Positions 730 to 50,494 are shown, numbered from the stretch's first letter. The stretch is DNA of 64,000 nucleotides from Isurus oxyrinchus (GCA_026770705.1 JANJGN010000121.1:1240001-1304000), one strand, 5' to 3'. Numbers and translations are program-made. The notes: generated by a model from the sequence alone, not told the origin.

Positions 730-775
730 ATGGGAGAGGTCGGTCTGATACTGATCTTCATCAGCTTGCTGCAAG
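730..775 (+). CDS. Gene A signal-peptide exon (MGEVGLILIFISLLQG)
   Basis: ATG at 730, hydrophobic core, phase-1 donor CAAG|gtacaa; acceptor tttag at 711-715. Confidence 0.8.
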
Positions 776-1084
776 GTACAAATTCATTACTGATCGGAAC
801 TCAGGGAATTGGATTCTTTCCTGGAGTGAGGAAGTGAATATTTAATTTTAGAGAAAAGGGTTAGTGATCACACAGAGAGTGAGTGAATAGCGAGTCAGAG
901 AATTTAGCAAAAGCAAAAGTCTCATACGGACTCGAAACACCAACTCTGTTTCTCTCTCCACAGATGCTGTCAGACCGGCTGAGTTTTTCCAGCATTTTCT
1001 GTTTGTGCATCAGAGAGCTTGTTTCAATAGGAATGACAGTGCATTTATATAGCACCTTTAATGCAGTAAAACATCCTTATTGCT

Positions 1085-1560
1085 TCACAGGATTCCCCCA
1101 CAAGGGGTAACATCCCCTCAGCATCCACCCTGTCAAACCCCCCACCACCTCAGAATCTTATATGTTTCAATAAGATCACCTCTCATTCTTCTAAACTCCA
1201 ATGGATACAGGGCCCAACCTGCTCAACATTTCCTCATAAGACAAACCCCCTTCATCCCAGGAATCAGCCCAGTGATCCTCCTCTGAGCTGCCTCCAATGC
1301 AGAGTCTATCCCTCCCTAAGTAAGGAGACCAGAACTCTACACACTGCTCCTGATACAATCTCACCAACGCCCTGTACAGTTGTAGCAAGACTTCCCTCCT
1401 TTTATACTCCATCCCTTTGCAATAAAGGCCAACATTCCACTTGCCTTCCTCATTCCGTGCTGTTCCTGAATGCTGACTTTCTGTGATTCATGTACAAGGA
1501 CACCCAGATCCCTCTGTACCGCATTCTGCTGCCTCTCTCCATTGAAGTAATATTCTGCTT
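1085..1560 (-). mobile_element. CR1-like LINE 3' fragment
   Basis: MEYKRREVLLQLYRALVR..L.Q.CVEFWSPY, the CR1 ORF2 C-terminus. Confidence 0.8.
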
Positions 1561-1595
1561 TTTGATGTCCTGTCTCTTCCCTTGTTGCCTTTCAG

Positions 1596-1952
1596 GAGTG
1601 ACGTCAGAGGGATGGTCTATGAAGGCGCTGTCTCGGAGGGCCATCAGCAGCTCTTGTGTGGTTATTCCGTGTAGCTTTGACTTTCCTTCCCACTCTTACA
1701 CAGCACTGCACGGAGCTTGGTATAAATATTGGTATAGATGGAAATATACCATCACATACACCAAAGATCCCAACTATGCGATGGCCACATTCGTGGGACG
1801 TGCTAAAATAATCGGCGACTTGGAAGGGAAGAATTGTTCGGTGAGGATTGACAGTCTCAGAGCTGAAGATAGTGATGTGTATTACTTTTATGTGGATGTG
1901 GAGGGCTACACAGATCACACTTTTACACAACCAGTCCAACTCCAGGTTCTTG
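1596..1952 (+). CDS. Gene A V-set Ig exon (Siglec-type)
   Basis: ttcag| ... CVVIPCSFDFP ... W ... GDLEGKNCSVRIDSLRAEDSDVYYFY ... QLQVLG|gtaagt; Siglec cysteine pattern (CxxIPC plus E-strand Cys). Confidence 0.9.
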
Positions 1953-2082
1953 GTAAGTCCCAGTTCCTTTCACACTCAGTCTATCAGCACAAGGGGGTCA
2001 TGTTCTCATCTCAGAGCCAGGCAGTCATGGGTTGAATTCCTGCTCCAGGAGATGTCAGAACAAAGTCCAGTATGTGATCTGG

Positions 2083-2430
2083 TGCAGTACTGAGGGAGTT
2101 CCACACTGTCAGAGGGTCAGTACTGAGGGAGTGCTGCACTGTCGGAGGGTCAGTACTGAGCGAGTGCCACACTGTCAGAGCATCAGTACTGCGGGAGTGC
2201 TGCACTGTCGGACGGTCAGTACTGAGGGAGTGCTACACTGTCGGAGGGTGAGTACTGAGGGAGTGCTGCACTGTCACCGGGTCAGTACTGATGGAGTGCT
2301 GTACTGTCGGAGGGTCAGTACAGGGGGAGTTCTGCACTGTCGGAGGGTGAGTACCGAGGGGGTGCTGCACCTTTGGGGGGTCAGTATTGAGGGAGTGCTG
2401 CACCGTTGGGGGGTCTTTGCCGAGTGAGTG
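2083..2430 (-). repeat. 30-bp satellite (cagtgcagcactccctcagtactgaccctccga family)
   Basis: Tandem units, reverse orientation. Confidence 0.9.
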
Positions 2431-3054
2431 CTGCTCTGTCTGAGAATTATCACTTGTATCAAAATGTTTTTAACTTTACTGTTGTTCCCACTTCAGCTGC
2501 AACTGCTCCACATCCCCATGTGTTAACTGGAGCATGTCAGCCTGGAGTTACGTGGAATTGCAGAGCAGAATCTGCTCTCACACATTGAAGCTGGCAATCG
2601 CTAAGTGTCCCTCAGTGATGATGTTTTCTGATGGAATGAAACTTGGCAAAGCCGTGGGTAGTGATAAGGAGAGATTGGGCATGAGAGGGGCAGGATCAGT
2701 GTGAGGTGGGCAGACACATGGCTGATGCAGTTCAGCGCAGTGTCGTGTGAAGTGACGCACTTTGTCAGGATGAATACAGACAGATATTGGACAGTAATGA
2801 TTTGGACAGGTGTAGGTGAGCAGAGACCTGGGCGTCTCTCTGCACTCATTCTGAAAGATTAAAGGACAAATTGTTGAGGTGATGAAGAAAGAAAATGTCT
2901 TCCTTGTGTTAACAGACTGAGGAACCCAGTTAAAAGCAAAGAGATCATGCGGGAACTTTATAAATCACTGGTTAGAACTCAGCTGGAATATTGTTCAGAA
3001 CGCTGGGCTCCACACTTCAGGAAAGATGTAAGAGCTTCAGAAAGGGTGTCCAAG

Positions 3055-3420
3055 AGGACAAAACTGTAAAAACTGGGACATAAGAGTCCTGCTCCAAACT
3101 GGTCTTGTATAGCTTAACATATAACAGTGGTAAAACTGGGAAATAAGAGTCCTGCTCCAAACTGGTCTTGTATAGCTTAATATAAAACACCAGTAAAACT
3201 GGGAAATAAGAGTACTGGTCCAAACTGGTCTTGTATAGCTTAATATAGAACACCAGTAAAACTGGGAAATAAGAGTCCTGGTCCAAACTGGTCTTGCATA
3301 GCTTAATATAGAACACCAGTTAAACTGGGAAATAAGAGTACTGGTCCAAACTGGTCTTGTATAGAATAATATAGAACACCAGTAAAACTGCGAGATAAGA
3401 GTACTGATCTGAACTGATTT
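3055..3420. repeat. 63-bp minisatellite, about 6 copies, inside a CR1 fragment
   Basis: Repeated aaaactgggaaataagagt.ctg.tccaaactggtcttgtatagcttaat. Confidence 0.85.
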
Positions 3421-3429
3421 TTTGCTTCT

Positions 3430-3890
3430 GGGTGGAGAGGAGATTGAGCAGAATGGGTCCAGGGATGAGGGATTTTAGCTACAAGGTTGGGTTGGAGGAG
3501 CTGGGGTTGTTCTCCTTGGAACAAAGGAGATTGAGGGGGGATCTGATCGAGGTGTACAAGATGATGATGGGTTTAGATAAGGTAGACGAAGAGAAGATGT
3601 TGCCATTAGCTGATGGTACAAGGACCGGGGGACACAGATTGAAGGTTGTGGGTGGGGGGCGATGTGAGGAGGAACTTTTTTACACAGCGAGTGGTAATGA
3701 GCTGGAACTCGCTGCCTACGAGGATGGTGGAAGTGGAGACGATGAACAATTTCAAAAGGAAATTGGACGGACAATTGGAAATAAACTCACAGGGATACGA
3801 GGACAGAGCGGGGGGAATGGGACTGATTGGATTGCTCTACAGAGAGACAGCATGAACTGGATGGGCCAATGGCCTCCTTCTGTGTTCTGA
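3430..3890 (+). mobile_element. CR1-like LINE 3' fragment
   Basis: LGLFSLEQRRLRGDLIEVYK. Confidence 0.85.
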
Positions 3891-3975
3891 GTGTCTGTGA
3901 CCCTATTGAAAAATCAGAGGACAAATACAAATTGTTTTCTGCTTGTCAGTTAACATCTGGAACTTTCTATTACAG

Positions 3976-4263
3976 ATGCTCCAGATAAGCCAGTTATTGT
4001 GCTCCTGAAGGATTTACAGGAGGGGACTCCTGCACATATCATTTGTAAATGCCTCTACACCTGCCCTGATAACCACCCCAATCTAACCTGGAGTGAATTG
4101 CTGACTTCATCGGTCAGCAACATTACAGAGAACGGTGGTGAGGTTTCCGCTCTACTGACCTTTAACCCTTCGTTCAAGCATCATGGACGAACTCTCCGCT
4201 GTACGTGCGACTACCCTCAAACCAGCCATCGAGTGGTCAGCTCCGTTACTCTGAGTGTAAAGT
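3976..4263 (+). CDS. Gene A domain 2 (Siglec C2-set)
   Basis: tacag|(D)APDKPVI...CKCLYTCPDNHPNLTW...ALLTFNPSFKHHGRTLRC...LSVK|gtaagt; phase 1-1. Confidence 0.9.
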
Positions 4264-4771
4264 GTAAGTATTGATTAGAACATCATGCTTGTGATGGAGG
4301 GGGAGTCGGTCTCCTATTAAATCAGGCATTGGAGAAGGCGCAAGTTGGATTGACAAGGATGATTCCAGAACTGAGATGTTATAGCTATCAGGAAAGACTG
4401 AACAAGCTGGGATTCTTTTCTCTAGAAAAGAGAAGGCTGAGGGGGTGACCTCATCGAGGTCCTTAAAATGGTGAAAGGGTTTCGATAGGGTAGATGTGGA
4501 GAAGATGTCTCCACTTGTCGGAGTGACGAAGAGTTAGGGGCCATCAATATAAGATCATCACTAATAAAATGGTGCACACTGCTAACAATGTGTGTTCATG
4601 GTGGAGGGAGTGAATGTTGAAGATGGTGGGTGGGATGCCAATCAATCGGGCTGCTTTGTCCTGGATGGTGTCGAGCTTCTTGAGTGTTGTTGGAGCCGCA
4701 CTCATCCCGGCAACTGGAGAGAATTCCATCACACTCAGTGTTTAATGTGTTGATAATTTTGTATTTGAAAG

Positions 4772-5029
4772 ATTCTCCTCACAACACGTCTGTCAGGCTG
4801 ACACTGGAAAAAGGAAAGGTGATTTCTCTAAGTTGTTCCAGTGACGGGAATCCAGCAGTCCACAATTTCACCTGGTTTAAGATCTCCCAAGGAAAGATGA
4901 CGAATCTCGCGCTCGCTGGTCAAACTATTACAGTTCCTTATGGATTCGATGAGGAAATCTCCTACTACTGTGAAGCAACAAGTATCCTGGGCAGTTCCCA
5001 GTCTCTGCCCATTAGAATTCCCACTGAAT
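4772..5029 (+). CDS. Gene A domain 3 (CD22-like C2/I-set)
   Basis: aaag|(Y)SPHNTSV...LSCSSDGNPAVHNFTWFK...YYCEATSILGSSQS|gtgagt. Confidence 0.85.
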
Positions 5030-6329
5030 GTGAGTAATTTCAATCCTGACTTTTAAACAATTCCACATCTTGTCCAAACTCCGAGGTGAACCAAATCTCC
5101 CCTTGGGTGTTGCTGAAAACATGCTGTCGAAGGTTTCAATCCTCGTCAGGACAGAGTCACGAGAAAACCCAATCTCAAAGGGAACAGCCATTTCTGATGC
5201 GGGGGAAGAGGGCGTGCTGATTGGCTGGCAAGTCGACATTTCTCCACAGTTTGTTCACAATTCTCAGTGATGGTCACCATGAAACTACCAGATTGTTGTA
5301 AAAACCCATCTGGGCCAGTAATCTCCTTTAGGGAGGGAATTCTGCCATCCTTACCCGGTCTGGCCTACATGTGACTCCTGACCCACAGCCATGTGGGGGA
5401 ATCTTAACTGCCCCTCTGAATGGGCCGGGCATGCCACTCAGTTGTATTCGAGCGGGCGGCTCACCACCGCCTTCTCAAGGGGCAACTAGGGATGGGCAAT
5501 AAACGCTGGCCCTGCCAGTGATGCCCACATTACTGAATGAATTCCAATAGAAGAGGAATCCTCCCATTCTAGAGATTGGCGATCCATACACTGGGCTGAC
5601 ATTCCCAGTCATTCAATAATCAGCCTGTTCCCCCATTCAATCAGATCACGGCTGGTCTGTATATTAACCCCATCCACCCAGCTCGGTTCCTTAAACCTTA
5701 AACACCCCCCGACCCAACAGAAATCTCCCAATGTCAGTTTTGAAATTTACAATTGACCCCTCCCAGCCTCGACAGCTTTTTCTGGGGGAGAGAGTTCCAG
5801 ATTTCCACCCCCCCTTTGTGTGAAGAATTGCTTCCTGACATCACCCCCTGAACGGCCTGGCTCCAATTTTAAGATTCTGCCCCCTTGTTCTGGACCCCCC
5901 CCTCACCTCACCCCCACCCCCACCCCCCACCCCCACCCTCACCCCCACCCCCACCCCCACCCCCACCCCCACCCTCACCCCCACCCCCTCACCTCACCCC
6001 CACCACCAGGGGAAATAGTTTCTCTCTATCGACCCCATCAAATCCTTTAATCATCTTAAACCCCTCGATTAGATCACCCCTTAATCTTCAAGACTCGAGG
6101 GAACACAAGCCTGGTCTGTGCAACCTGTCCTCAGAATTTAACCCTTTCAGCCCCGGGATCGTTCTGGTGACTCTGGGCTGCAGCCCCTCGGAGGGCAATA
6201 TACCCTCCCTGAGGGGCGGGACCCACAACTGAAGCCACTAACTGCAGGTGGGCTCTGAGCAGAGATTTATAACCTGACGCATCTCTCCGAGCCTCTTTGT
6301 ATTCCCACTTCCTTGGGGTAAAGGCCCCT

Positions 6330-8685: not shown

Positions 8686-8689
8686 CTTA

Positions 8690-9585
8690 TCACCCTCCAA
8701 CAGTGCAGATCTCCCTAATTACTGATCCTCCGACAGTGCAGCACTCCCTCAGTACTGACCCTCCGACAGTGCAGCACTCCCTCAGTACTGACCCTGCAAC
8801 AGTGCAGCACTCTTCCAGTACTGACCCTCCGACAATGCAGCACTTCCTCAGTAATGACCCTCCGACAGAGCAGCACTCCCTCAGTACTGAACATCTGACA
8901 GTGCAGCAATCTTCCAGTCCTGACCCTCCAACAGTGCAGCATTCTTCCAGTACTGACCCTCCGACAGTGCAGCATTCCCTCAGTACTGACCCTCCGACAG
9001 TGCATCACTCCCTCAGTACTGACCATCCAACAGTGCAGCACTCCTTCAGTACTGACCATCTGACAGTGCAGCACTCCCTCAGTACTGACCATCCAACAGT
9101 GCTGCACTCCCTCAGTACTGACCCTCTGACAGTGCAGTACTCTCTCAGTACTGACCCTCTGACAGTGCAGCACTCCCTCAGTACTGACCCTCTGACAATG
9201 CAGCACTCTCTCAGTACTGATCCTCCGACATTGCAGCACTCCCTCAGTACTGACCATCCAACAGTGCAGCACTCCATCAGTACTGAACCTCCAACAGTGC
9301 AGCACTCCCTCAGTACTGACCATCCAACAGTGCAGCACTCCCTCAGTACTGACCATCCAACAGTGCAGCACTCCCTCAGTACTGACCCTCCGACAGTGCC
9401 GCACTCCCTCAGTACTGACCATCCAACTGTGCAGCACTCCCTCAGTACTCATTCTCCGACAGTGAAGTACTCGCTCAATACTGACTATGCGGCAGTGCAG
9501 CTTTCACAGTACCCACCCTCCAACAGTGCAGCACTCCCTCAGTACTGACCCTCCGACAGTACAGCACTCCCTCAGTACTGAGCTG
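8690..9585 (+). repeat. 30-bp satellite array (~29 units)
   Basis: TVQHSLSTDP pseudo-ORF. Confidence 0.95.
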
Positions 9586-9712
9586 TAGTGACTGCCTGAA
9601 TTAAGTGCTTTGTGGTGAAGGAACCTACATTGATATCACACCTTTCACATTCTCAGTGTCTCTCAAAGTGCTTCACAGACAATGGAAGTAACTGATCTTT
9701 ATTTGTTTTCAG

Positions 9713-9994
9713 ACACACCACAGAATCTCTCAATTAATTCTCTTGATATGATTAACGTTTCATCGATCAATATAATTGAGGGGTATTCTGCAGTGATAAT
9801 CTGCTCAGTCGAGAGCTTCCCAACTTCTAACCTGACGTGGCGACATCTTAATGTCCCAATGAACAGAACAAGTTCCAACAATGATCTGTGGTTGGTGATT
9901 CCTCACGTTACATCCAGGGACACTGGAGACTATCAGTGTGTGGCAGAGAATGAACATGGAGCAGTGGAGGGGTTCATAACCATCACTGTGGAAC
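9713..9994 (+). CDS. Gene A repeated C2 exon, copy 1 (282 nt)
   Basis: ttcag|...PQNLSI...IICSVESFPTSNLTW...DTGDYQCVAENEHG...TVE|gtgagt. Confidence 0.9.
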
Positions 9995-10473: not shown

Positions 10474-10755
10474 ATGCTCCACAGAACCTCTCAATTACTT
10501 CTCTTGATATGATTAACGCTTCATCGATCAATATAATTGAGGGGAATTCTACAGTGATAATCTGCTCTGTCGAGAGCTTCCCAGCTTCTAACCTGACGTG
10601 GCGTCATCTTAATGTCCCAATGAACAGAACAAGTTCCAACAATGAGCTGTGGTTGGTGATTCCTCACGTTACATCCAGGGACACTGGAGACTATCAGTGT
10701 GTGGCAGAGAATGAACATGGAGCAGTGGAGGGATTCATAACCATCACTGTGGAAC
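10474..10755 (+). CDS. Gene A repeated C2 exon, copy 2 (282 nt)
   Basis: tttag| ... |gtgagt; near-identical to the exons at 9713, 41668 and 42874. Confidence 0.9.
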
Positions 10756-10789
10756 GTGAGTTACACAGAATTCTACATTCTCTTGTTAT

Positions 10790-11830: not shown

Positions 11831-12021
11831 GTTATATGTGAATCCTCCTTATAGAAACCTGCATGTACATGGATATTATCAATAAATATTACATAGATAA
11901 ATGTTATTTGTATAGACCTTTCATGCATAGACAATATCACTTCACAAGTTCAGAATTACTACATGTACATAGGGAACCATTCTCAAACTGTACCGGAGTC
12001 ATTCATTGGCTGATTTTACAG

Positions 12022-12118
12022 GGCGAGATTCCAATGAATGGAAAGCAGGATTGCTTGGAGCTGGAATCTGTCTGAGTGTTGGACTGAGTGGATTCTTCAT
12101 CTTCAAGTGTGTGAGAAA
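12022..12118 (+). CDS. Gene A transmembrane exon (RRDSNEWKAGLLGAGICLSVGLSGFFIFKCVRK)
   Basis: ttttacag| ... gagaaa|gtaagt, 97 nt, paralogous to the 47754-47850 TM exon. Confidence 0.85.
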
Positions 12119-12749: not shown

Positions 12750-13140
12750 AGTCAGGACACAAAGGGTTAACAGTTTGTTAACAACACAACACTAAGGCCC
12801 TACGTTTCAATGAAAGGGTTTTCACAATTGTTCCCCAATTCCTGATTTGACTCACAGAGAGACATCAACCCTTTCTCATTAAATACACAGAGGGAGCAGC
12901 ACAGGAAGAGGTCATTCAGCCCAAGCAGAGCGTGTGGGCAGTTCCTCCCCAGGCGAGCAGTCGGACAGGTACTGGGTAAGTAACGGAACGATTGGAATTC
13001 ACTTCCACCACCAACACCGTCCTTTGTTGATGTTGTGACTTTATAAAGACAGATTCCAATGATTGATGCCTTTGAAAGATTTCTACTGATTATTGAGATC
13101 TGGGTGTGAGGCTCAAGTCTGTTGTACAGAACATCTTTCT
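12750..13140 (+). promoter_or_regulatory. Copy 1 of putative promoter/non-coding first exon (inside gene A intron)
   Basis: Same block as 19370-19745 and 26180-26490; donor |gtaagt at 12976. Confidence 0.5.
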
Positions 13141-15375: not shown

Positions 15376-15492
15376 AAGAAAGATGAGAAGGATCTGGAAA
15401 TGAAATCTAACCGCGGAGTCAATCCTGATACAGATGATGATCTTTACGCAAACTGTGAATTTGCCAAGGATTCTGTTTATGGGAATTTATAA
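15376..15492 (+). CDS. Gene A terminal exon (KKDEKDLEMKSNRGVNPDTDDDLYANCEFAKDSVYGNL*)
   Basis: tacag| phase 0; LYAN motif and terminal SVYGNL ITIM; AATAAA at 16267. Confidence 0.75.
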   Translation, partial: KKDEKDLEMKSNRGVNPDTDDDLYANCEFAKDSVYGNL

Positions 15493-17345: not shown

Positions 17346-17349
17346 AACA

Positions 17350-18724: not shown

Positions 18725-18955
18725 GCACGCAAAGGGTTAACAGTTTTCTAACAGTGCGAGGCAAAGAGCATCTTTCTCACTTGGTACCAAGCACTTCCTC
18801 ATTTTGTCTCACAGTGACACATCCACCCTTTTTAATTAAACACAAATAGGGAGCAGCACAGGAAGAGGTCATTCAGCCCAAGCAGAGCGTGTGGGCAGTT
18901 CCTCCCCAGGCGAGCAGTCGGACAGGTCCGGGGTAAGTAACGGAATGATTGGAAA
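18725..18955 (+). promoter_or_regulatory. Copy 2 of putative promoter/non-coding first exon
   Basis: ACTTCCTC and CAGGAAG ETS-type sites; donor at 18933. Confidence 0.5.
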
Positions 18956-19369
18956 TCACGGGGGGAGTTCTGAGGGCTCCTAATCCATTGTCCTGTCTTG
19001 TAAATCAGCACCTTAATACTGACCCTTCAACAGTGCAGCACTCCCTCAGTACTGATCCTCCAACATTGCAGCACTCCCTGATTAATGTCCCTCTGACAGT
19101 GCAGCACTCCCTCAGTACTCACCCTCAAACAGTGGAGATCTCCCTCAGTACTGACCTTACAATAGTGCAGTAATGACCATCCGACAGTGCAGCACTCCCT
19201 CAGGACTGACACTGGGCAGTTTCAGTCTACTCTGTGGGGCAGACGTCCCCTGAATGGGGTCTTGAATCCCACAACATTCTGACCCCCTGAATTTGGCTGT
19301 GAAACCCACTGACCCACAGGAGAAACTCCTGGTCAATGACTGTCCACCTGTGAGCAGAAATATCAACAC

Positions 19370-19990
19370 AGGGTCAGGACACAAAGGGTTAACAGTTCAC
19401 CAACATCTCAAAACATGAGCTGGTCTGTCACTTTGATCCAACTTCCTCATTTTGACTCACAGACACACATCAACCCTTTCTCATTAAATACACAGAGGGA
19501 GCAGCACAGGAAGAGGTCATTCAGCCCAAGCAGAGCGTGTGGGCAGTTCCTCCCCAGGCGAGCAGTCGGACAGGTCCTGGGTAAGTAACGGAACGATTGG
19601 AATTCACTTCCACCACCAACACCGTCCTTTGTTGATGTTGTGACTTTATAAAGACAGATTCCAATGACTGATGCCTTTGAAAGATTTCTACTGATTATTG
19701 AGATCTGGGTGTGAGGCTCAAGTCTGTTGTACCGAACATCTTTCTAGTTCAAGGGATGAGGGAAGTGCAGAGACATGAGCTTTGGGATGCCCTGAGGTGG
19801 TGAAAGGTGCTATAGAAATGCAAATCCTTCATTGTTTGTTTTTCTTAAAGCCTTGTAACTCTCTGCTGAGCACCTATCATCCCACAGAGAATCAAATTAG
19901 TCTGTGAAGACATTGTCTAAAAGCAGTTCTGATCTCTCGAGAGCTGTCGGACAAGAGGTGAGGTCTCATTAACTCCTTTCTCTTTCACAG
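19370..19990 (+). promoter_or_regulatory. Copy 3: putative promoter/first exon and intron 1 of gene B
   Basis: PU.1/ETS-like ACTTCCTC at 19441; donor at 19581; leads to the SP exon acceptor at 19990. Confidence 0.6.
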
Positions 19991-20008: not shown

Positions 20009-20069
20009 ATGGAATATCTGGGAGTGGACAATGATCGGGAAATCTACTTCCTCTTGTCACTTCTCCAAG
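20009..20069 (+). pseudogene. Gene B signal-peptide exon
   Basis: Paralogue of 26772-26811. The ATG at 20031 is 1 nt out of frame; the ATG at 20009 gives MEYLGVDNDREIYFLLSLLQG|gtaata. Confidence 0.7.
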
Positions 20070-20772: not shown

Positions 20773-21146
20773 TTGGACTGTCACAAGAGTGGAAAGGTGA
20801 CACTCCACGAGAGGTGACAGCACAGGAAGGTTCATGTGTACAGATTCCATGTCATTACAGTTACTTATCAAATTTCGTAGGGAGATCACGTGCAGAATCT
20901 GGTTGAAAGGAATAGATGGGAACCCACAGCCTAAATGGTCTATAGCCTTTCACTCCGAGGGTCACAATCACAGGGATCAAAGATTCCGCCATCGTACCCG
21001 GCTGTCTGGAGACCTGAAAGATGGTGACTGTTCCCTGATTATAAACAACATCAGACGGGAAGATGCAGGACCTTATTTTTTCAGAATAGAGTTTGACAGC
21101 AGGAATAGTTACAGCTACTATCCTGTAACCCAGCTTCACGTTTCTG
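20773..21146 (+). pseudogene. Gene B V-set exon (retains YFFR; frameshifted)
   Basis: Acceptor reads cccccg rather than cccag; length 374 nt, implying a 1-nt deletion near 20895; donor |gtaagt intact. Confidence 0.85.
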
Positions 21147-21669: not shown

Positions 21670-21822
21670 GACATCTGAATGTCCAAATGAACAGAAGAAG
21701 TTCCAACAATGAGCTGTGGTTGCTGATTCCTCACGTTACATCCAGGGACACTGGAGACTATCAGTGTGTGGCAGAGAATGAACATGGAGCAGTGGAGGGG
21801 TTCATAACCATTACTGTGGAAT
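21670..21822 (+). pseudogene. Gene B 5'-truncated copy of the 282-nt C2 exon
   Basis: Only HLNVQMNRRSSNNELW...TVE|gtgagt remains; the 5' half is replaced by unrelated sequence 21487-21669. Confidence 0.8.
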
Positions 21823-23485: not shown

Positions 23486-23625
23486 ACAGTGGAGGAGAGA
23501 TTCTGCACGTGATCCTGATCCTGGGAATACGAGCTGTGATATTCCTTGTGGCTGTGGTTATCACTATCACTGGAGTCTGTGTCTGGGAGAGACAAACAGT
23601 GAAAGGAAGTCGACAGACTGTTTGA
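23486..23625 (+). CDS. Gene B terminal TM exon with intramembrane Arg and short tail (YSGGEILHVILILGIRAVIFLVAVVITITGVCVWERQTVKGSRQTV*)
   Basis: tctag| phase 1; about 27 hydrophobic residues with one Arg; stop at 23623-23625; no cytoplasmic Tyr. Confidence 0.8.
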
Positions 23626-26179: not shown

Positions 26180-26730
26180 CCACTTCCTCATTTTGTCTCA
26201 CAGTGACACATCAACCCTTTCTAATTAAACATACAGAGGGGGCAGCACAGGAAGAGGTCATTCAGCCCAAGCAGAGCATGTGGGCAGTTCCTCCCCAGAC
26301 GAGCAGTCGGACAGGTCCTGGGTAAGTAACGGAATGATTGGAATTCACTTCCACCACCAACACCGTCCTTTGTTGATGTTGTGACTTTATGAAGACAGAT
26401 TCCAATGATTGATGCCTTTGAAAGATTTCTACTGATTATTGAGATCTGGGTGTGAGACTCAAGTCTGTTGTACAGAACATCTTTCTAGCTCAAGGGATGA
26501 GGGAAGTGCAGAGACATGAGCTTTGGGACGTCTTGAGGTGGTGAAAGGTGCTATAGAAATGCAAATCCTTCAATGTTTTTCTTTCTTAAAGCCTTGTAAC
26601 TCTCTGCAGAGCACCTATCATCCCACAGAGAATCAAATTAGTCTGTCAAGACATTGTCCAAAAGCAGTTCTGATCTCTTGAGAGCTGTCGGACAAGAGGT
26701 GAGGTCTCATTAACTCCTTTCTCTTTCAGA
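26180..26730 (+). promoter_or_regulatory. Copy 4: putative promoter/first exon and intron 1 of gene C
   Basis: ACTTCCTC at ~26182; donor at 26322; directly upstream of the SP exon. Confidence 0.6.
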
Positions 26731-26771: not shown

Positions 26772-26811
26772 ATGATCGGGAAATCCTACTTCCTCCTGTC
26801 ACTTCTCCAAG
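26772..26811 (+). CDS. Gene C signal-peptide exon (MIGKSYFLLSLLQ)
   Basis: ATG at 26772; phase-1 donor CAAG|gtaata. Confidence 0.8.
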
Positions 26812-32095: not shown

Positions 32096-32473
32096 TTGGA
32101 TTGTCACAAGAGTGGAAAGGTGACACTCCACGAGAGGTGACAGCGCAGGAAGGTTCGTGTGTACAGATTCCATGTCATTACAGTTATCCATCAGATTTGG
32201 TAAAGAAACCCCAGGTCGGAATCTGGAAAATGAGAAGATACATACAGAACAAATGGTCTAAATGGTCTATAGCCTTTCACTCCAAGGGTCACAGTCGCGA
32301 GTTATCACAGTTCCACCATCGGACCCGGCTGTCTGGAGACCTGAAAGATGGCGACTGTTCCCTGATTATAAACAACATCAGACGGGAAGATGCAGGATCT
32401 TATTTTTTCACGATAAAATTTGGCAATGGTCCGAGACATAACGTTTCCCCTGAAACCCAGCTTCACGTTTCTG
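32096..32473 (+). CDS. Gene C V-set exon 1 (YFFT, no essential Arg)
   Basis: cccag|(V)GLSQEW...CVQIPC...GDCSL...DAGSYFFTIKF...LHVS|gtaagt; 378 nt, open. Confidence 0.9.
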
Positions 32474-35669: not shown

Positions 35670-36038
35670 ATAAACCCTCACAAGAGTGGAAAGGTGACAG
35701 TCCACGAGAGGTGACAGCACAGGAAGGTTCGTGTGTACAGATTCCATGTCATTACAGTTATCCATTGTGTCCGGAAAACCAACCGCGAGGTGGAGTCTGG
35801 TTTAATAATGAGAAACAGATTCCCTGGGCTCCCATTGCCTTTCACTCCAAGGATCACAGTCACGAGTTACCACGGTTCCACCATCGGACCCGGCTGTCTG
35901 GAGACCTGAAAGATGGCGACTGTTCCCTGATTATAAACAACATCAGACGGGAAGATGCAGGAACTTATATTTTCAGAATAGAATTTGACAATGGTCCGGG
36001 CCATAACTATTACCCTGTAACCCAGCTTCACGTTTCTG
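35670..36038 (+). CDS. Gene C V-set exon 2 (YIFR, Arg retained)
   Basis: cccag|(D)KPSQEW...CVQIPCHYSYPLC...DAGTYIFRIEF...LHVS|gtaagt; 369 nt, open. Confidence 0.9.
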
Positions 36039-36845: not shown

Positions 36846-37142
36846 ATTTCACAGATAAACCCATGATATTCCCTGCTGAAATTATTGCAGGGAAGCGTGT
36901 GGATGTAAGCTGCACCTTCAACACAACGTGCAATGGAACAGCAGCACCTGTCTTAACCTGGGACACTCCCACTGATGTACCTGGATCAGTCTCAAACACT
37001 GTAACTCAGCATGGTGTCACTCTGACCTATACTTCTGTTCTGACCCTGATCCCATCACTCAAACACCACGGACACACTCTCAGCTGCAGAGTGAGATATC
37101 CATCTGTTTCATCGGAGCGGACCCTTGTACTAACTGTACAAG
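36846..37142 (+). CDS. Gene C Siglec C2-set exon (DFTDKP...CTFNTTC...SVLTLIPSLKHHGHTLSC)
   Basis: Typical Siglec domain 2 with the extra B-C loop Cys; GT-AG, phase 1-1. Confidence 0.9.
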
Positions 37143-40780: not shown

Positions 40781-41667
40781 GNNNNNNNNNNNNNNNNNNN
40801 NNNNNNNNNNNNNNNNNNNNNNNNNNNNNNNNNNNNNNNNNNNNNNNNNNNNNNNNNNNNNNNNNNNNNNNNNNNNNNNNNNNNNNNNNNNNNNNNNNNN
40901 NNNNNNNNNNNNNNNNNNNNNNNNNNNNNNNNNNNNNNNNNNNNNNNNNNNNNCACATGCACACGCGCACACAGACAACACACANNNNNNNNNNNNNNNN
41001 NNNNNNNNNNNNNNNNNNNNNNNNNNNNNNNNNNNNNNNNNNNNNNNNNNNNNNNNNNNNNNNNNNNNNNNNNNNNNNNNNNNNNNNNNNNNNNNNNNNN
41101 NNNNNNNNNNNNNNNNNNNNNNNNNNNNNNNNNNNNNNNNNNNNNNNNNNNNNNNNNNNNNNNNNNNNNNNNNNNNNNNNNNNNNNNNNNNNNNNNNNNN
41201 NNNNNNNNNNNNNNNNNNNNNNNNNNNNNNNNNNNNNNNNNNNNNNNNNNNNNNNNTCAGTGCTGCACTGGAGTCTCGGTGTCAGCTCCGATTCTGTGCT
41301 GAAGGAAGGTAAACTCCAGATCAACAAGACCCTGAATTGGATGAGCAAAATCCTTAACAGAGAATTGTAGATTTACCCCTCAGTGCTCCATCGATTAAAT
41401 ATAATTCATTGCCTGTCAAGCCCTTGGGGACATCCTGAGGATGTGAAAGGGAGTTTCTTTAAATCCGGATGGGCAGGGTCTCTGGTGGGAGAATGCTCCT
41501 GCAGTGTGACAGTTTACATAGGCAGTGCCCATTGTAAATGTGACATAGGAACTTATCTTGAGGGAAGGTGCCTAGAAATGCACACAGGCATCAGATACAG
41601 AGACATGATGCATGGAGTCTTGCTGTGCACAGTGCTTGCTCACATTAAATACTTGATTTGTTCTTAG

Positions 41668-41949
41668 ATGCTCCACAGAATCTCTCATTTACTTCTCTTG
41701 ATATGATTAACGCTTCATCGGTCAATATAATTGAGGGGAATTCTGCAGTGATAATCTGCTCTGTCGAGAGCTTCCCAGCTTCTAACCTGACGTGGCGACA
41801 TCTTAATGTCCCAATGAACAGAACAAGTTCCAACAATGAGCTGTGGTTGGTGATTCCTCACGTTACATCCAGGGACACTGGAGACTATCTGTGTGTGGCA
41901 GAGAATGAACATGGAGCAGTGGAGGGGTTCATAACCATCACTGTGGAAC
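41668..41949 (+). CDS. Gene C repeated C2 exon (282 nt)
   Basis: cttag| ... |gtga; near-identical to 10474-10755. Confidence 0.9.
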
Positions 41950-42873
41950 GTGANNNNNNNNNNNNNNNNNNNNNNNNNNNNNNNNNNNNNNNNNNNNNNN
42001 NNNNNNNNNNNNNNNNNNNNNNNNNNNNNNNNNNNNNNNNNNNNNNNNNNNNNNNNNNNNNNNNNNNNNNNNNNNNNNNNNNNNNNNNNCCTGTCTCAGT
42101 GCTGCACTCGAGTCTCGGTAGCAGCTCTGATTCTGTGTCGAAGGAAGGTAAACTCCAGATCATCAAGACACTGAATTGGATGGAGCAACCTCCTGAACAG
42201 TGAATTGTAGGTTTATCACCCAATACCCCATTATTCCAAAGCAATTCCTCCATGGTGAAATCTCCGTGAACATCCTGATCATGTGAAAGACACTTTCTTT
42301 TCTTCTAGCCTGACAGTGTCTCCTCTGGTGGAAGGCTGTAATTACAGCGTGACAGTTTACATATCCACATGCAGCAAGAGCTGAACAACACTCAGCTTGG
42401 GCTGAGAAATGACAAGTAATGTTCACACCACACAAGTACCAGGCAGTGATCATCTCCAACAAGAGAGAATCTAACCATCTCACCTTGATATTCAATCACT
42501 TTCCCATCGCTGAATCCCCCACGATCCACATCCTGGGGGATGTTAACCAAACAACTAACTGGACCGGCCATAAATACTGAGGCTACAGGAGCCGGTCAGA
42601 GGCTGGGAATTCTGTGGGGGTGAATAACTCACCACCACCTCCTCAAGGGCAATTAGGGATGGGTAATAAATGCTGGTCTAGATAGATACAGCCACTTCCC
42701 ATGAATATGCAAAAAGGAACACACTGGCAGTGTCTGTTACAAATGGTGACATAGAAACTTATAATGGAGAAAGAAGCCTTGACATGCACATAGACACCAG
42801 ATGGAGAGAGATGATACCTGGAGTCTTGCTGTGCACTGTGTTTGCTCACAATGAAACCTTTATTTGTATTTAG

Positions 42874-43155
42874 ATGCACCACGGAACCCATCAATTACTT
42901 CTCTTGATATGATTAACGCTTCATCGATCAACATAATTGAGCGGAATTCTGCAGTGATAATCTGCTCTGTCGAGAGCTTCCCAGCTTCTAACCTGACGTG
43001 GCGACATCTTAATGTCCCAATGAACAGAACAAGTTCCAACAATGAGCTGTGGTTGGTGATTCCTCACGTTACATCCAGGGACACTGGAGACTATCAGTGT
43101 GTGGCAGAGAATGAACATGGAGCAGTGGAGGGGTTCATAACCATCACTGTGGAAT
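42874..43155 (+). CDS. Gene C repeated C2 exon (282 nt)
   Basis: tttag| ... |gtgagt. Confidence 0.9.
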
Positions 43156-43174
43156 GTGAGTGTGGAGATACATT

Positions 43175-45090: not shown

Positions 45091-45271
45091 GGATCTGAAC
45101 TCCGCACTAGTGACTGGACTGGAGGGTTTCTCAGCTGAAGCCACGGCCGCCAATGGTGGAGAGATGGGAATGGGAGAATGTCCAAGAGGTCGGAATTGGA
45201 GGAGCGCAGAGATTTCGGAGAGCTGTGGGGTGTGGGGATTACCTGCTGATTGTTCTCTGTCTTTGTTCCAG

Positions 45272-45547
45272 ATCCCCCACAGGAGACGATGGTGTCCATC
45301 AGCAGATCCTCAGGTGGGATAAGAGAGGGAAGCAATGTCACATTAACCTGCTCCAGTGAAAGTGTCCCACCGATATCTCATTACACCTGGTTCAGGATCG
45401 AGGGGAACACCAGCACCCAGTTAAACACAAGTAGCCGCACTCTCTCCTTCACTCCTGTAACACGGGAGAATGATGCAGGTTTCTACTGCACAGCGAGGAA
45501 CCCAGTGGGTAACAGCACCTCCAACATCACCCACCTGAACGTACAAT
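45272..45547 (+). CDS. Gene C CD22-like C2 exon
   Basis: ccag|(Y)PPQET...IREGSNVTLTCSSESVPPISHYTWF...DAGFYCTARNPVG|gtaagc. Confidence 0.9.
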
Positions 45548-46318: not shown

Positions 46319-46612
46319 ATAAGCTGGAGATTTCCCAGCAGTCGGAGTGCACTCAGAGGTCAGAGGGGGTCACCTGTGTCTGTGTGGCCACCTCCAACCC
46401 AGCCGGAGACCTCACCTGGCACCTGCCCAGTGCCAACATCAGTGGTAACCAAACACACGGAAGTTTTGTGTCGTGGCAGGTCAGAGATGGGCATCTGGTG
46501 ACTGGTTCCCTCACCCTGATGAGACCCCAGGATGAGGGGGGAGTGATGGCATCCTGCTCGGTTCAAAACCCACACGGGGAAGCCATGTTCAAGGTTTATC
46601 TGTGGGTCAAAG
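46319..46612 (+). CDS. Gene C membrane-proximal Ig exon (MAG domain-5-like)
   Basis: SEC...VTCVCVATSNP...LTW...SLTL...CSVQNPHG; CxC motif as in MAG d5 (QCLCVVKSNP); |gtgaga. Confidence 0.88.
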
Positions 46613-47753: not shown

Positions 47754-47850
47754 GTAGAGACTCCAGTAAATGGACAGTAGGATTGTTCACGGCTGGGATC
47801 ATGTTGAGTGTTTTCCTGGCTGGAATCTTCATCTTCATCTGTGTGAGAAA
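47754..47850 (+). CDS. Gene C transmembrane exon (GRDSSKWTVGLFTAGIMLSVFLAGIFIFICVRK)
   Basis: tacag| ... |gtaagt; uncharged TM. Confidence 0.88.
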
Positions 47851-47994
47851 GTAAGTCTGAAGATTTAACTTGATTTTAATATAAACATTTGTTGAGGACT
47901 AATTGGACAGTTTTTACAAAGGGCCAGCACAGGCACGATGGGCTGAGTGGCTTCCTCCTGAGCTGTGAGATTTTAAATTCTTTAATCGAATGTC

Positions 47995-48435
47995 ACTGGT
48001 GAGGCCGTTATTAAATTGCCCATCCCTAATTGCCCCTTGAGAAGGTGTTGGTGAGCTGCCTTCTTGACCCGCTGCAGTCCATGTGGTGTAGGTACACCCA
48101 CAGTGCTGTTAGAGAGGGAGTTCCAGGAGTTTGACCCAGCGACAGTGAAGGAACGGTGATATATTTCCAAGTCAGGATGGTGAGTGACTTGGAGGGGAAC
48201 TTCCAGGTGGTGGTGTTCCCATGTGTCTGCTGCCCTTGTCCTTCTAGATGGTAGAGGTCGTGGGTTTGGAAGGTGCTGTTGAAGGAGCCTTGCTGAGTTG
48301 CTGCAGTGCATCTTGTAGATGGTACACACACTGCTGCCACTGTGTGTTCATGGTGGAGGGAGTGAATGTTTAATGTGGTGGATGGGGTGTCGATCAATCG
48401 GGCTGCTTTGTCCTGGATGGTGTCAAGCTTCTTGA
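47995..48435 (-). mobile_element. LINE 3' fragment
   Basis: KKLDTIQDKAARLI...HSLHH. Confidence 0.8.
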
Positions 48436-48567
48436 TTCTGTGCTTTGTGCAGAAGTGATTTAAAGAGACAGTCCCAGTCATTGGTGTAAGTTACAGTGGG
48501 CTCTGTGTCTGTGCTGCACTGACTCTCTGCTATATGATAACCACAGTGTGATATTGTGTTATTTCAG

Positions 48568-48649
48568 GAGAAAGACAGCGATGGAGGAGAGAGTTTCAGG
48601 GACCAGCGACATTGCATTGACCCCCAGTCCACTCTCTGTGAAGCACCAG
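48568..48649 (+). CDS. Gene C cytoplasmic exon 1
   Basis: ttcag|G RKTAMEERVSGTSDIALTPSPLSVKHQ|gtacag; phase 2-0. Confidence 0.8.
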
Positions 48650-49844
48650 GTACAGGAGCTGTTTACACTCACTCCAAAGCTTCACTCTCAGTGTGTAGAC
48701 AACACATATCCCAGATTCCCAGCCCAGTTACCCACTGATTTGTACCTGTGGAGTCAGCAATGGTTCAGTATCATGCTGTCTCTCTGTTATGACACAGCAA
48801 CTGGTAAAGGCTGTTGTTTAAAATCCCAGAGGGAAACTTTAAACAACTGTCATAACCTATATTTCCCAGTGGAATGTTTGAGATGCAGCTCTAAATTCAG
48901 GAATAAGAGCACCAGTTCTCGACATGGGTCTTATATCAAACTACATGAGACATTTATTAATTTACACAAGTTAAACATATGCACATGGCTACAAGCTAGC
49001 ATTATCATAACTTTTTAACAAATTCCGAAACTAATCTCCTCAAAGATAACCCATAGAATTTAAGCAGATTCCAGGCAAAGCATTTTCACCTCACAAATTC
49101 CAAATGAGGTTCCTTTCACTTTGGTTCCTTTGCAGACAAGTGTAGGCTTACAGCTGCTTTGCTGTTACAAGCGTCTGCTCTGCACACACAAAACTGCTCA
49201 AGTTATACCCAGCTCTTGAGTGTAAAGAAGACGGAGAATGATACGCTCTTGATTGGTCAGGGGATCAATGGTTAGGAGAGAAGGTGGGAGACTGGGGTTT
49301 GTGAAACATATCAGCCATGTATGAATGGTGGAGCAGACTCGATGGACCGAATGGTCTAATTTCTCCTCCTATGTCTGATGGTCTTATGGCTTCTGTTTGA
49401 AGGTAAATTCGCAATGTATCATCAGGACCTTTGAACTCCATCTCTTCCAATAATAAATCCCCTTTCATCGTATCAATTTTATTAGTAATATAAACGTTGA
49501 TTGGTTTAAGATTTCACTCTCAGACTTTGAATGTTTTATTTAAAAATGCAAATTACCACTTTACCTCTTTGTTTACATCTCAAAACTACTATACATCAAA
49601 ACACACAGACTGGCTGTCTTTAATCCAATTTAAATACACACAGACACACACACAGACTAAACCTCTGTTTAAAAAGACAGTTTGCAATTACATTACATAC
49701 ATTAATAGATTCATAACACTCTGTCTCTATCCCTCCTCTATCCCTCTCTCTCATCCTCTCTCTGATTACAAGGTTCATGTTATTGAGCCTCACACCAGGC
49801 ACCTGTGTGCAGAATCCAAGCCGTCACTCACCAGAGCCATTACC

Positions 49845-50125
49845 GAGGGAGTGCGGGACTGACAGCGGGTCAGTACTGAGGGAGTGCTGCACTGTTGGAG
49901 GGTCAGTACTGAGGGAGTGCTGCACTGACAGAGGGTCAGTACTGAGGGAGCGCTGTATTGTCGGAGGGTCAGCACTGAGGGAGTGCTGCACTGTTGGAGG
50001 GTCAGTACTGAGGGAGTGCTGCACTGTCAGAGGGTCAGTACTGAGGGAGCGCTGTATTGTCGGAGGGTCAGCACTGAGGGAGTGCTGCACTGTTGGAGGG
50101 TCAGTACTGAGGGAGTGCTGCACTG
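49845..50125 (-). repeat. 30-bp satellite
   Basis: Tandem units. Confidence 0.9.
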
Positions 50126-50245
50126 CCATAGGTGGTGCCTTTTATCCGATAGGAGAGAGATAATTAAACGAGTCTGCACAATAATTTAACCCTATCAGTA
50201 CCAGTAATTGATGTGAGGATGTCTTCTGTTTCCATTTCTCTGTAG

Positions 50246-50494
50246 GGTAAACAGAACGTGCTGATTACTGAGCCCCGGGAAACAACCAGAGACACAACTA
50301 GCGAGGGGGAGACCCCAGCTCCCCGGGGTCTCTCTGAAGGTCCAGTAGGAGGCGATGTTGGACATGGGAACCCCGACAATACCGCCGACCTTCTCTACGC
50401 CAACATCAACTTTTCAAAGCTGCCCGGCGGTGACAGGACTGTGCACAGGAGCGAGGACACGGAATATGCACAGATCAGGTTCCAGAAAAACTGA
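50246..50494 (+). CDS. Gene C terminal exon with ITIM (LLYANI) and ITSM (TEYAQI)
   Basis: tgtag| phase 0, open to TGA at 50492-50494. Confidence 0.9.
   Translation, partial: GKQNVLITEPRETTRDTTSEGETPAPRGLSEGPVGGDVGHGNPDNTADLLYANINFSKLPGGDRTVHRSEDTEYAQIRFQKN

Follow-up and report, generated by a model that had tools for sequence, protein, structure and literature searches.

Is the paired design of human Siglecs, in which an inhibitory and an activating gene are linked, as in Siglec-5/Siglec-14 and Siglec-11/Siglec-16 (PMC13358205, PMC4042635), also present in sharks? The teleost literature describes CD33-related Siglecs as absent from fish. The question is raised by a 64,000-nt stretch of the Isurus oxyrinchus genome (GCA_026770705.1 JANJGN010000121.1:1240001-1304000; hereafter the window), in which the original prediction placed three tandem genes that share Ig exons, end in different signalling modules and follow the logic of mammalian paired Siglecs. 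The reading we favour, at a probability of roughly three in four, is that the window is a piece of an elasmobranch-specific Siglec cluster in which genes A and C are intact, gene B, by origin of the activating type, has decayed to a pseudogene in the present haplotype, and pairing is a feature of the family at large.

Gene content of the window

All Siglec-type exons lie on the plus strand, head to tail, in the order A, B, C (Table 1), and no non-Siglec gene was recognised within the 64 kb. On the predicted exon map, genes A (730-15492) and C (26772-50494) stay open over 603 and 881 codons, respectively, with AG/GT at all internal exon boundaries and matching phases. The expected trio is thus complete for A and C, but B is damaged in its leader, V and Ig exons. 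Because gene C contributes both a V1 and a V2, the window holds four V exons, not three.

The two intact genes share Ig exons. Those of A at 9713-9994 and 10474-10755 match those of C at 41668-41949 and 42874-43155, with a DNA identity of 94-95% and a protein identity of 90-96%; identity in the flanking intron is ~90%. The predicted sharing of Ig exons therefore holds for A and C, but the V domain of A belongs to a different lineage, with 27-30% identity to the B/C V domains. None of the three assembly gaps breaks a reading frame: two (40782-40953 and 40985-41256) fall inside the C2-to-Ig intron of gene C, and the third (41954-42089) begins 4 nt past the visible GTGA donor of exon 41668-41949. 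Their flanks are homologous to gene A intron 10068-10469. A gap could conceivably hide one more phase-1 Ig exon, so the count of common-type Ig exons in gene C could be wrong.

Table 1. Siglec-type features and assembly gaps of the window, by position
Feature	Position	Strand	Basis or remark
Gene A leader exon MGEVGLILIFISLLQ	730..775	+	phase-1 GT donor
Gene A V-set exon, MAG-like	1596..1952	+	Pfam V-set; solved MAG best, 6e-15; 89% to Cetorhinus P0237
Gene A C2-set exon	3976..4263	+	exon map with matching phases
Gene A third Ig exon	4772..5029	+	Pfam Ig_3
Gene A fourth Ig exon, type common with C	9713..9994	+	DNA 94-95% identical to 41.66 kb, 42.87 kb
Gene A fifth Ig exon, type common with C	10474..10755	+	identity to C Ig exons
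Gene A TM exon, helix without charged residue, phase-2 donor	12022..12118	+	97% to Carcharodon P0016
Gene A cytoplasmic exon 1	12891..12975	+	93% to Cetorhinus P0185/P0188
Gene A last exon: DLYANC, SVYGNL, stop	15376..15492	+	motif reading; double YxN
Two relics of A-type cytoplasmic exon 1 (18828-18947, 19488-19580)	18828..19580	+	upstream of B leader; tblastn, duplicated blocks
Gene B leader exon	20009..20069	+	alignment to C leader; 1-nt deletion
Gene B V-set pseudo-exon	20773..21146	+	alignment to paralogues; AG of the acceptor changed to CG
Gene B Ig exon, 3' half only	21672..21822	+	5' half replaced by unrelated sequence
Arg-in-TM terminal exon DSGGEILHVILILGIRAVIFLVAVVITITGVCVWERQTVKGSRQTV-stop (ILILGIRAVIF...)	23486..23625	+	intact AG acceptor, phase 1
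Third relic of A-type cytoplasmic exon 1	26244..26336	+	upstream of C leader; tblastn, duplicated blocks
Gene C leader exon MIGKSYFLLSLLQ	26772..26811	+	N-terminus same as P0003, P0156
Gene C V1 exon	32096..32473	+	Pfam V-set, Ig_CD22
Gene C V2 exon	35670..36038	+	Siglec Arg (YIFRIEF), Siglec Cys pattern
Gene C C2-set exon	36846..37142	+	Pfam C2-set_2; solved matches MAG, CD33 domain 2
Three assembly gaps, unfilled (40782-40953, 40985-41256, 41954-42089)	40782..42089	.	all in gene C introns
Gene C Ig exon, common type	41668..41949	+	donor GTGA visible right before gap 41954
Gene C Ig exon, common type	42874..43155	+	identity to A Ig exons
Gene C Ig exon	45272..45547	+	Pfam Ig_3, Ig_2
Gene C membrane-proximal Ig exon	46319..46612	+	94% to Carcharodon P0170
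Gene C TM exon, uncharged helix	47754..47850	+	TM reading, phases
Gene C cytoplasmic exon 1	48568..48649	+	exon map with matching phases
Gene C last exon: LLYANI (ITIM), TEYAQI (ITSM), stop	50246..50494	+	motif reading

Siglec identity and signalling ends

Both V domains of gene C match Pfam V-set at 48-50 bits (cut-off 26) and Ig_CD22 at 38 bits (cut-off 27). The top 17 solved-structure matches of V2 are all Siglecs, led by Siglec-5, Siglec-7, CD33 and Siglec-8 at ~1e-13, with sialoadhesin and MAG close behind and CD22 at 8e-5. Siglec V domains carry two cysteines in strand B (C-x4-C) and one in strand E, replacing the canonical B-F pair; the cysteines of V2 (GSCVQIPC, DCSL) align residue for residue with those of Siglec-5 and Siglec-7, and its F-strand Arg (YIFRIE) aligns with theirs. 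This Arg is also kept in the pseudo-V of gene B (YFFRIEF) and is absent from C V1, which has Thr (YFFTIKF), and from the V of gene A, which has Tyr (YYFYVDVE) and finds MAG as its best solved match, along with sialoadhesin and Siglec-5. Together, these matches support A and C as members of the Siglec family, with sialic-acid binding as a prediction.

The three signalling modules all lie in their predicted places: DLYANC/SVYGNL in A, an Arg-bearing TM helix without a tail Tyr in B and LLYANI/TEYAQI in C. In gene C, TEYAQI follows LLYANI by 23 residues, which gives the ITIM + ITSM layout of CD33-related Siglecs and resembles turtle, frog and mammalian tails (xLHYASxxF...TEYSEI). From these motifs, its product most likely senses sialic acid as an inhibitory receptor and recruits SH2 phosphatases. 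The tail of gene A had been read as YxN plus ITIM; both motifs are present and SVYGNL, the final one, also fits an ITIM, but that fit is not kept across relatives, and a conserved module of two YxN motifs is the better description of this tail.

Decay of gene B

The lesions of gene B were read directly in alignments against its paralogues and affect the leader, the V acceptor, the V frame and the Ig exon. In the leader, the deletion breaks the frame of the canonical MIGKS start but keeps that of an upstream ATG; in the V exon, a 1-nt deletion near 20892 shifts the frame into a stop at 20904. Gene B is not intact in the present assembly, and only its terminal exon is. That exon, 3.1 kb upstream of the gene C leader and 8 kb downstream of the gene A stop on the same strand, encodes an Arg within the TM helix followed by a 17-residue tail without Tyr and a stop, and is 93% identical to Carcharodon P0180/P0184 and 78-89% identical to other sharks. 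By analogy with Siglec-14, Siglec-16 and activating IgSF receptors, the Arg of its helix would pair with an acidic residue in an ITAM adaptor.

The V of gene B shares 68.5% identity with C V1 and 69.4% with C V2. As B is a decayed relic and the V domains are only 68-69% identical, the window contains no functional near-identical pair. The nearest relatives of C V2 are instead the V domains of the activating Carcharodon proteins P0180/P0184/P0195, at 90-94% identity; for this reason we place the pairing at the level of the family and not of a local pair.

Some Isurus oxyrinchus contigs differ from the assembly at these sites. When contigs were mapped to the gene B region (19800-23800), with identity accepted down to 93%, one X1 contig and two X16 contigs (one run guessed to be DNA and one of RNA type) showed an additional T at 20892, which brings the V exon back into frame, and in other contigs an additional T at 20044 repairs the canonical leader. 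Gene B may therefore be alive in other haplotypes, although the contigs alone fit alleles and close paralogues alike.

An elasmobranch family with three tails

Relatives of a gene C-like protein come, among the best 120 of 144, exclusively from sharks, rays and skates, with several paralogues per species; among the relatives found, there are dozens per elasmobranch genome. In an unrooted tree of V domains, those of the elasmobranch B/C type form one group (91/99), apart from the tetrapod CD33-related clade (100/100); true MAG, Siglec-1 and Siglec-15 are not among its references. Carcharodon has a separate CD22-like gene, P0052, with V domains outside the B/C group. The pattern fits an independent, lineage-specific expansion of the B/C-type family relative to tetrapod CD33-related Siglecs, as had been proposed, and the many paralogues per species bear out the companion claim that the cluster is not a single MAG or CD22 orthologue.

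The search for intact Arg-TM paralogues in other sharks was also productive. The tail ends eight annotated proteins from Carcharodon, two Scyliorhinus species and Chiloscyllium, hence at least four shark species by annotation, and its Arg is invariant (8/8). In intact relatives the Arg-TM exon comes after a C2 or Ig exon. Loose ends of Isurus oxyrinchus RNA contigs from two RNA-type runs likewise join a C2 end (..ERTLVLTVQ) to position 23486. This C2 end differs by 2 nt from its sole match in the window (37120-37140), and that match is located 3' of the Arg-TM exon, which makes the transcript the product of a paralogue outside the window. The paired-Siglec logic is thus upheld by the Arg-TM relatives of four shark species and by C2-to-Arg-TM RNA, but not by the local copy, with its decay and its V identity of 68-69%.

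Whether these genes had already been described has a divided answer: the automatic pipeline of NCBI already predicts and names them in many elasmobranchs (sharks and rays), and our literature search found no published paper on them. Its Gnomon models include, in Carcharodon, the 'CD33-like' XP_041037177 (P0156) and the activating 'Siglec-12' proteins P0180/P0184 and P0195, and, in Cetorhinus, the 'Siglec-12/13' proteins P0003, P0186-8 and P0229/P0237. These elasmobranch models resemble the window genes in family, exon types, the three tails and tandem V domains, with per-exon identity of 85-100%, and none of the relatives listed reaches same-species-level identity to a whole window gene. The Cetorhinus models differ in how the parts are combined, with an A-type V on an ITIM/ITSM tail and a B/C-type ectodomain on an A-type tail, whereas our predicted gene A joins a MAG-like 5' half to a B/C-type 3' half.

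Alternative readings

A working or polymorphic gene B, in which the 1-nt deletions are assembly errors or mark one presence/absence allele and the intact form is leader-V(Arg)-TM(Arg), is the alternative we take most seriously, and we still consider it unlikely. The contigs with a T behind 20892 (one X1, two X16) and behind 20044 do restore its frames, the shared phase 1 of its V donor and the Arg-TM acceptor would keep a V-to-TM splice in frame, a V-V-TM form without C2 exists in Cetorhinus (P0003), and the Arg-TM exon has no damage at all and matches its Carcharodon counterpart at 93% identity. However, neither the CG acceptor of the V exon nor the missing 5' half of the Ig exon is a 1-nt error, and the frame-restoring contigs may be paralogous given the 93% mapping threshold. 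The sole splice junction seen into an Arg-TM exon, moreover, comes from a C2 exon type that is missing at the B locus.

There is very little to recommend the idea of a single gene, in which gene A would use the exon at 23486 as an alternative 3' end and so yield YxN-tailed and activating isoforms. The exon does lie downstream of A on the same strand, and the phase-1 donors of the gene A Ig exons would suit its phase-1 acceptor; against this, gene A already ends at a stop 8 kb upstream, the degenerate leader, V and Ig exons in between are the mark of a separate duplicated gene, and reads, which were mapped on 19800-23800 only, gave no joint from gene A to the Arg-TM exon. Equally hard to sustain is one-to-one orthology to conserved Siglecs, with A as MAG and B and C as CD22. 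Gene A does resemble MAG (Siglec-4; 5lfr, 5lf5), most closely so among solved V domains (6e-15), in its aligned YYF-x-D-x-GY core and its five Ig domains; the Pfam Ig_CD22 model matches the B/C-type V domains, and NCBI names some relatives 'MAG-like'. But dozens of paralogues per elasmobranch genome speak against single orthologues, the Carcharodon CD22-like P0052 is a separate gene outside the B/C tree group, and solved CD22 is far weaker on V2 (8e-5) than are CD33-related Siglecs (~1e-13). Gene A, a member of a multigene cluster unlike MAG, lacks the MAG Arg, its last two Ig exons and tail are modules common to C and to other genes of the cluster, and its tail also occurs on B/C-type genes in other sharks. 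We therefore rejected gene A as a MAG orthologue: Arg118 is replaced by Tyr, and the tail is the double-YxN module of the family and not that of MAG.

Origin and comparison with human Siglecs

The reading of the window as a piece of an elasmobranch-specific cluster envisages an origin by tandem duplication and exon shuffling, through which a small set of ectodomain exons would have been combined with three alternative signalling ends. The predicted product of gene A begins with a leader and a MAG-like V that lacks the sialic-acid Arg, continues with C2 and three further Ig domains, and ends in TM and the two-YxN tail; that of gene C would have a leader, two V domains of which V2 but not V1 has the Arg, then C2 and four further Ig domains, and finally TM and the ITIM + ITSM tail.

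The cluster shares with Siglec-5/14 and Siglec-11/16 the linkage of its genes, an inhibitory form with an ITIM and a second Tyr motif, an activating form with a TM Arg and short tail, and a ligand-binding V common to both forms, as the 90-94% identity of C V2 to Carcharodon activating V domains indicates. In contrast to those human pairs, V identity between the candidate partners of the window reaches only 68-69% and the V exon shows no trace of gene conversion; the activating copy has decayed, the inhibitory gene encodes a V1 and a V2, and there is a third kind of tail, the double-YxN one. The V-domain tree also separates the shark expansion from the tetrapod one.

Two further human genes offer instructive parallels. 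Human Siglec-12 (Siglec-XII) has two V-set domains, one without the essential Arg, ahead of its C2 domains and a tail of the ITIM/ITSM type, and the primate SIGLEC12 protein in our comparison (P0074) has two V domains. Gene C has the same arrangement, but its V domains were duplicated separately: V1 and V2 of the shark fall among shark and not among primate V domains in the tree. In human SIGLEC16/SIGLEC16P, a small frameshifting deletion kills the activating partner and leaves the inhibitory neighbour intact. Gene B resembles SIGLEC16P in that a small frameshifting deletion inactivates an activating partner beside an intact inhibitory gene, here C. The frame-restoring contigs make a polymorphism of gene B possible. 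Gene B has at least four lesions, the missing acceptor and the half-lost exon among them, so its decay goes further than that of a simple null allele.

The inhibitory/activating, or 'brake/accelerator', design of mammalian Siglecs would, on this reading, be found in sharks as well, within a family in which the local activating copy is broken.

Results

Two intact Siglec genes and one broken copy

The 64-kb window is vertebrate DNA with many satellites and retroelement fragments and five runs of N, and all of its Siglec-like exons lie on the plus strand. Mapping began with one V exon, queried against 1.84 billion representative proteins; the shark proteins returned by this search and a later one were placed back on the window by tblastn, and the exon boundaries of genes A, B and C were then each read individually. 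Proteins were compared exon by exon, with a joined string used only in the tree, for the two V pieces of gene B (X at the break). Gene C's V1 and V2 exceed the Pfam cut-offs of both the V-set and the Ig_CD22 model. The original prediction of three tandem genes with three different tails survives for genes A and C, two intact Siglec genes whose predicted exons join into open frames; the third unit is a decayed activating copy.

Siglec-type exons, gaps and repeats in the window
Feature	Positions	Strand	Remark
Gene A, whole	730-15492	+	1812 nt; 603 codons plus stop
Gene A leader	730-775	+	
Gene A V	1596-1952	+	Tyr at the sialic-acid Arg position
Gene A C2	3976-4263	+	
Gene A Ig	4772-5029	+	
Gene A Ig	9713-9994	+	
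Gene A Ig	10474-10755	+	
Gene A TM	12022-12118	+	
Gene A cytoplasmic	12891-12975	+	
Gene A last exon	15376-15492	+	
Relics of gene A cytoplasmic exon 1	18828-18947, 19488-19580, 26244-26336		upstream of the gene B and gene C leaders
Gene B, whole	20009-23625	+	four lesions
Gene B Ig, 3' half	21672-21822	+	5' half is unrelated sequence
Gene B terminal (Arg-TM) exon	23486-23625	+	intact; AG acceptor, phase 1
Gene C, whole	26772-50494	+	2646 nt; 881 codons plus stop
Gene C leader	26772-26811	+	
Gene C V1	32096-32473	+	Thr at the Arg position
Gene C V2	35670-36038	+	Arg present
Gene C C2	36846-37142	+	
Gene C Ig	41668-41949	+	
Gene C Ig	42874-43155	+	
Gene C Ig	45272-45547	+	
Gene C Ig	46319-46612	+	
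Gene C TM	47754-47850	+	
Gene C cytoplasmic	48568-48649	+	
Gene C last exon	50246-50494	+	
Gaps	40782-40953, 40985-41256		intron between gene C C2 and next Ig exon
Gap	41954-42089		starts 4 nt past a visible donor (C|GTGA)
33-bp satellite	2085-2444, 8692-9581, 24568-25961, 49841-50132, 61032-61352	either	
24-bp tandem repeat	13721-15276		65 copies
43/44-bp (88-bp) repeat	16823-17346, 18200-18686		two arrays
Retroelement fragments	6359-8590, 51611-52234	+	
Retroelement fragments	37528-39536, 44000-45341	-	
CACCCC-type hexamer array	54339-55926		1.6 kb; GC 0.72, strong C skew

Gene C carries two V domains, and tandem V domains are usual in the shark family, with two to four in annotated relatives. 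Its tail holds an ITIM (LLYANI) and, 23 residues on, an ITSM (TEYAQI). The annotated Cetorhinus relative P0003 keeps the Arg in both V domains, whereas gene C has it in V2 only. A Carcharodon isoform, P0013, starts at an upstream ATG (MKYLGVDNDREILLPPVTSP) in another frame of the same leader exon; its N-terminus matches window positions 26750-26809 at 100% over 20 residues, and this is the ATG that is left in frame in gene B's damaged leader.

That assembly gaps break a gene C frame was considered and rejected, as all three are intronic and no frame depends on them. To the right of the first two lies sequence homologous to the gene A intron at 10068-10469, and the third follows the Ig exon that ends at 41949. 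A further Ig exon copy may be hidden in one of the gaps; since every Ig exon is phase 1-1, an extra copy there would leave the frame unbroken.

The 33-bp satellite (consensus about CAGTACTGAGGGAGTGCTGCACTGTCGGAGGGT) is present at five places within the Siglec genes or near them, one of these directly upstream of gene C's last exon. The 24-bp repeat occupies most of gene A's last intron, and the 43/44-bp arrays lie between gene A and the gene B relic. The retroelement fragments, in introns and flanks, include ORFs similar to reverse transcriptase and, on the minus strand, an ORF whose YIGDT-containing motif resembles the GIY-YIG endonuclease of Penelope-type elements (both identified by eye). 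The hexamer array yields spurious long proline-rich ORFs.

Gene A has a distinct V domain and a conserved double-YxN tail

Gene A has AG/GT at all internal boundaries, with fitting phases. Its V domain shares only 27-30% identity with the other V domains of the window, marking a different lineage, and its best solved match is MAG (6e-15). Orthology to MAG or CD22 was considered and rejected.

The gene A tail reads DLYANC, seven residues, (S)VYGNL and a stop. It follows a consensus found in at least ten shark species, D-[DN]-x-Y-A-N-C, seven residues, x-Y-[GAV]-N-[VIL], stop, and also borne by the annotated relatives P0186, P0016, P0007, P0216 and others. Both tyrosines are in YxN, the SH2 preference of Grb2, and they stand 11 residues apart, an ITAM-like spacing. 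The tail had been predicted to combine YxN with an ITIM; the double YxN is indeed conserved, but the residue at -2 in the last motif may be S, A or P, so that its ITIM fit is not the conserved feature. For this reason we infer that the tail would be a third kind of module that may be activating or inhibitory, and do not class it as an inhibitory tail.

Ectodomains and tails are combined differently in Cetorhinus: P0229 and P0237 join an A-type V-C2-Ig ectodomain to a C-type TM and ITIM/ITSM tail, and P0186-P0188 join a B/C-type ectodomain to an A-type TM and tail. These combinations suggest that gene A may have arisen by fusion of two ancestral genes, with the join in the interval at 5.0-9.7 kb that retroelements and satellites fill.

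Shared exons also link the genes of the window. The last two Ig exons of gene A and the first two after C2 in gene C are 94-95% identical in DNA and 90-96% in protein, with about 90% identity running into the intron; judged by eye, the homologous TM exons of A and C agree at about two thirds of their positions. The V exons of gene B, C V1 and C V2 share 84-86% DNA and 68-73% protein identity. The relics of gene A's first cytoplasmic exon before the leaders of both B and C show growth of the cluster by tandem duplication, the duplicated unit running from one gene's 3' end into the 5' end of the next.

Gene B is a decayed activating copy

Relative to its paralogues, gene B has four lesions. One base is missing from the leader, so that the canonical MIGKS start and the hydrophobic core are in different frames and an upstream ATG is left in frame; the V-exon acceptor is CG, where both gene C copies have AG; a 1-nt deletion near 20892 brings a stop at 20904; and only the 3' half of an Ig exon remains. 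The intact terminal exon encodes DSGGEILHV-ILILGIRAVIFLVAVVITITGV-CVWERQTVKGSRQTV-stop, with Arg in the TM and a Tyr-free tail. Gene B is thus a decayed copy of the activating type.

Sequencing runs were searched throughout as coded Logan contigs mapped at 93% identity or more, with depth figures left unused as repeats inflate the sums. Some contigs carry an inserted T after position 20892, and some after 20044, which would restore the V frame and the canonical leader, respectively; beside them lies a contig that has the same frameshift as the window. At 93% identity or more alleles and paralogues are not separable, so gene B may be polymorphic in the species, a reading that we consider improbable. 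A leader-to-V joint in two RNA-type runs (20068/9 to 20772/3) was rejected as proof of gene B splicing, as its two flanks are just 22-24 nt long and nearly the same in paralogues, and the joint is not specific to B.

In two small RNA-type runs of Isurus oxyrinchus, contigs align to the Arg-TM exon from its first position, and their part upstream of it reads ..GAGCGGACCCTCGTACTAACTGTGCA, the end of a C2 exon (ERTLVLTVQ). A search of the window with this C2 end found no C2 exon at the gene B locus; its sole match (2 mismatches) is the end of gene C's C2, which lies 3' of the Arg-TM exon. A paralogue outside the window therefore expresses a V-C2-ArgTM transcript, of the form seen in Scyliorhinus torazame P0069 and Carcharodon P0195.

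Activating relatives and the shark family

The search for intact Arg-TM paralogues in other sharks was successful: the same tail, with Arg invariant, ends eight annotated proteins (Carcharodon P0180, P0184 and P0195; S. torazame P0006 and P0069; Scyliorhinus canicula P0192 and P0208; Chiloscyllium punctatum P0023). The window's Arg-TM exon is 93% identical to Carcharodon's. Gene C V2 is 90-94% identical to the V domain of the Carcharodon activating forms, its nearest neighbour on the tree, and this near-identity is the mark of pairing at family level. The predicted logic of paired Siglecs thus holds for the shark family but not for the local trio, in which gene B is broken.

The top 17 solved matches of gene C V2 are all Siglecs: Siglec-5, -7, CD33 and -8 at 4e-14 to 1e-12, sialoadhesin at 5e-13 and MAG at 8e-12, with Siglec-15 (5e-8) and CD22 (8e-5) lower. 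Its two strand-B Cys, strand-E Cys and F-strand Arg align with those of solved Siglecs. The nearest proteins come from sharks and rays and are models of the NCBI pipeline that bear the names Siglec-5/7/8/10/11/12/13/14, CD33-like or MAG-like. All of the best 120 of 144 relatives of a C-like Carcharodon protein are elasmobranch, several per species. Compared exon by exon, the window is most similar to Carcharodon (92-100% identity) and Cetorhinus (85-96%), which points to a probable origin in a lamniform shark near Carcharodon.

A V-domain tree, as the original prediction had proposed, was built with IQ-TREE from 61 V domains and 123 columns; it is unrooted and true MAG, Siglec-1 and Siglec-15 references are absent. 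Elasmobranch B/C-type V domains form one group (91/99), apart from a clade of mammalian, turtle and frog CD33-related-type V domains (100/100). Gene A V joins Cetorhinus and skate 'MAG-like' proteins (100/97), and Carcharodon CD22-like V domains fall elsewhere. The tree fits separate expansions in elasmobranchs and tetrapods, and on it the shark family may or may not be the sister of the CD33-related Siglecs. The motifs of gene C's ITIM/ITSM tail are arranged like those of turtle, frog and mammalian tails, a hint, at the level of short motifs only, of common descent.

Discussion

Automatic annotation has already predicted these genes, and given them names, in many elasmobranchs. Our literature searches found no paper on shark or elasmobranch Siglecs and nothing relevant on shark DAP12. 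Published fish Siglecs, from teleosts only, comprise Siglec-1, CD22, MAG and Siglec-15, with CD33-related inhibitory Siglecs lacking (PMC7226832), and a 2025 review presents paired Siglecs as mammalian examples (PMC13358205).

A bolder reading, to which we give a probability of about 0.3, is that cartilaginous fish have a CD33-type Siglec system. Its ITIM and ITSM would be arranged like those of tetrapod CD33-related Siglecs, and it would include Arg-TM activating forms to match and a third type of tail, the double YxN, whose tyrosines have an ITAM-like spacing. On this view the jawed-vertebrate ancestor would already have had both the CD33-type tail and paired Siglecs, which teleosts would have lost; neither would have originated in tetrapods or mammals. 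Decay of activating members would then be a repeated and perhaps polymorphic event, for which human SIGLEC16P offers a parallel.

What the window chiefly adds is a clear decayed activating copy, together with an A-type gene that is putatively chimeric and an inhibitory gene with two V domains. They belong to a large, fast-shuffling shark and ray family in which inhibitory tails of CD33 type occur beside activating Arg-TM forms and one more type of tail, and the design of a self sialic acid brake plus a pathogen-decoy accelerator would then not be confined to mammals. With this family the arms-race model of paired receptors, and with it the loss of activating members, could be put to the test in a second and independent lineage.
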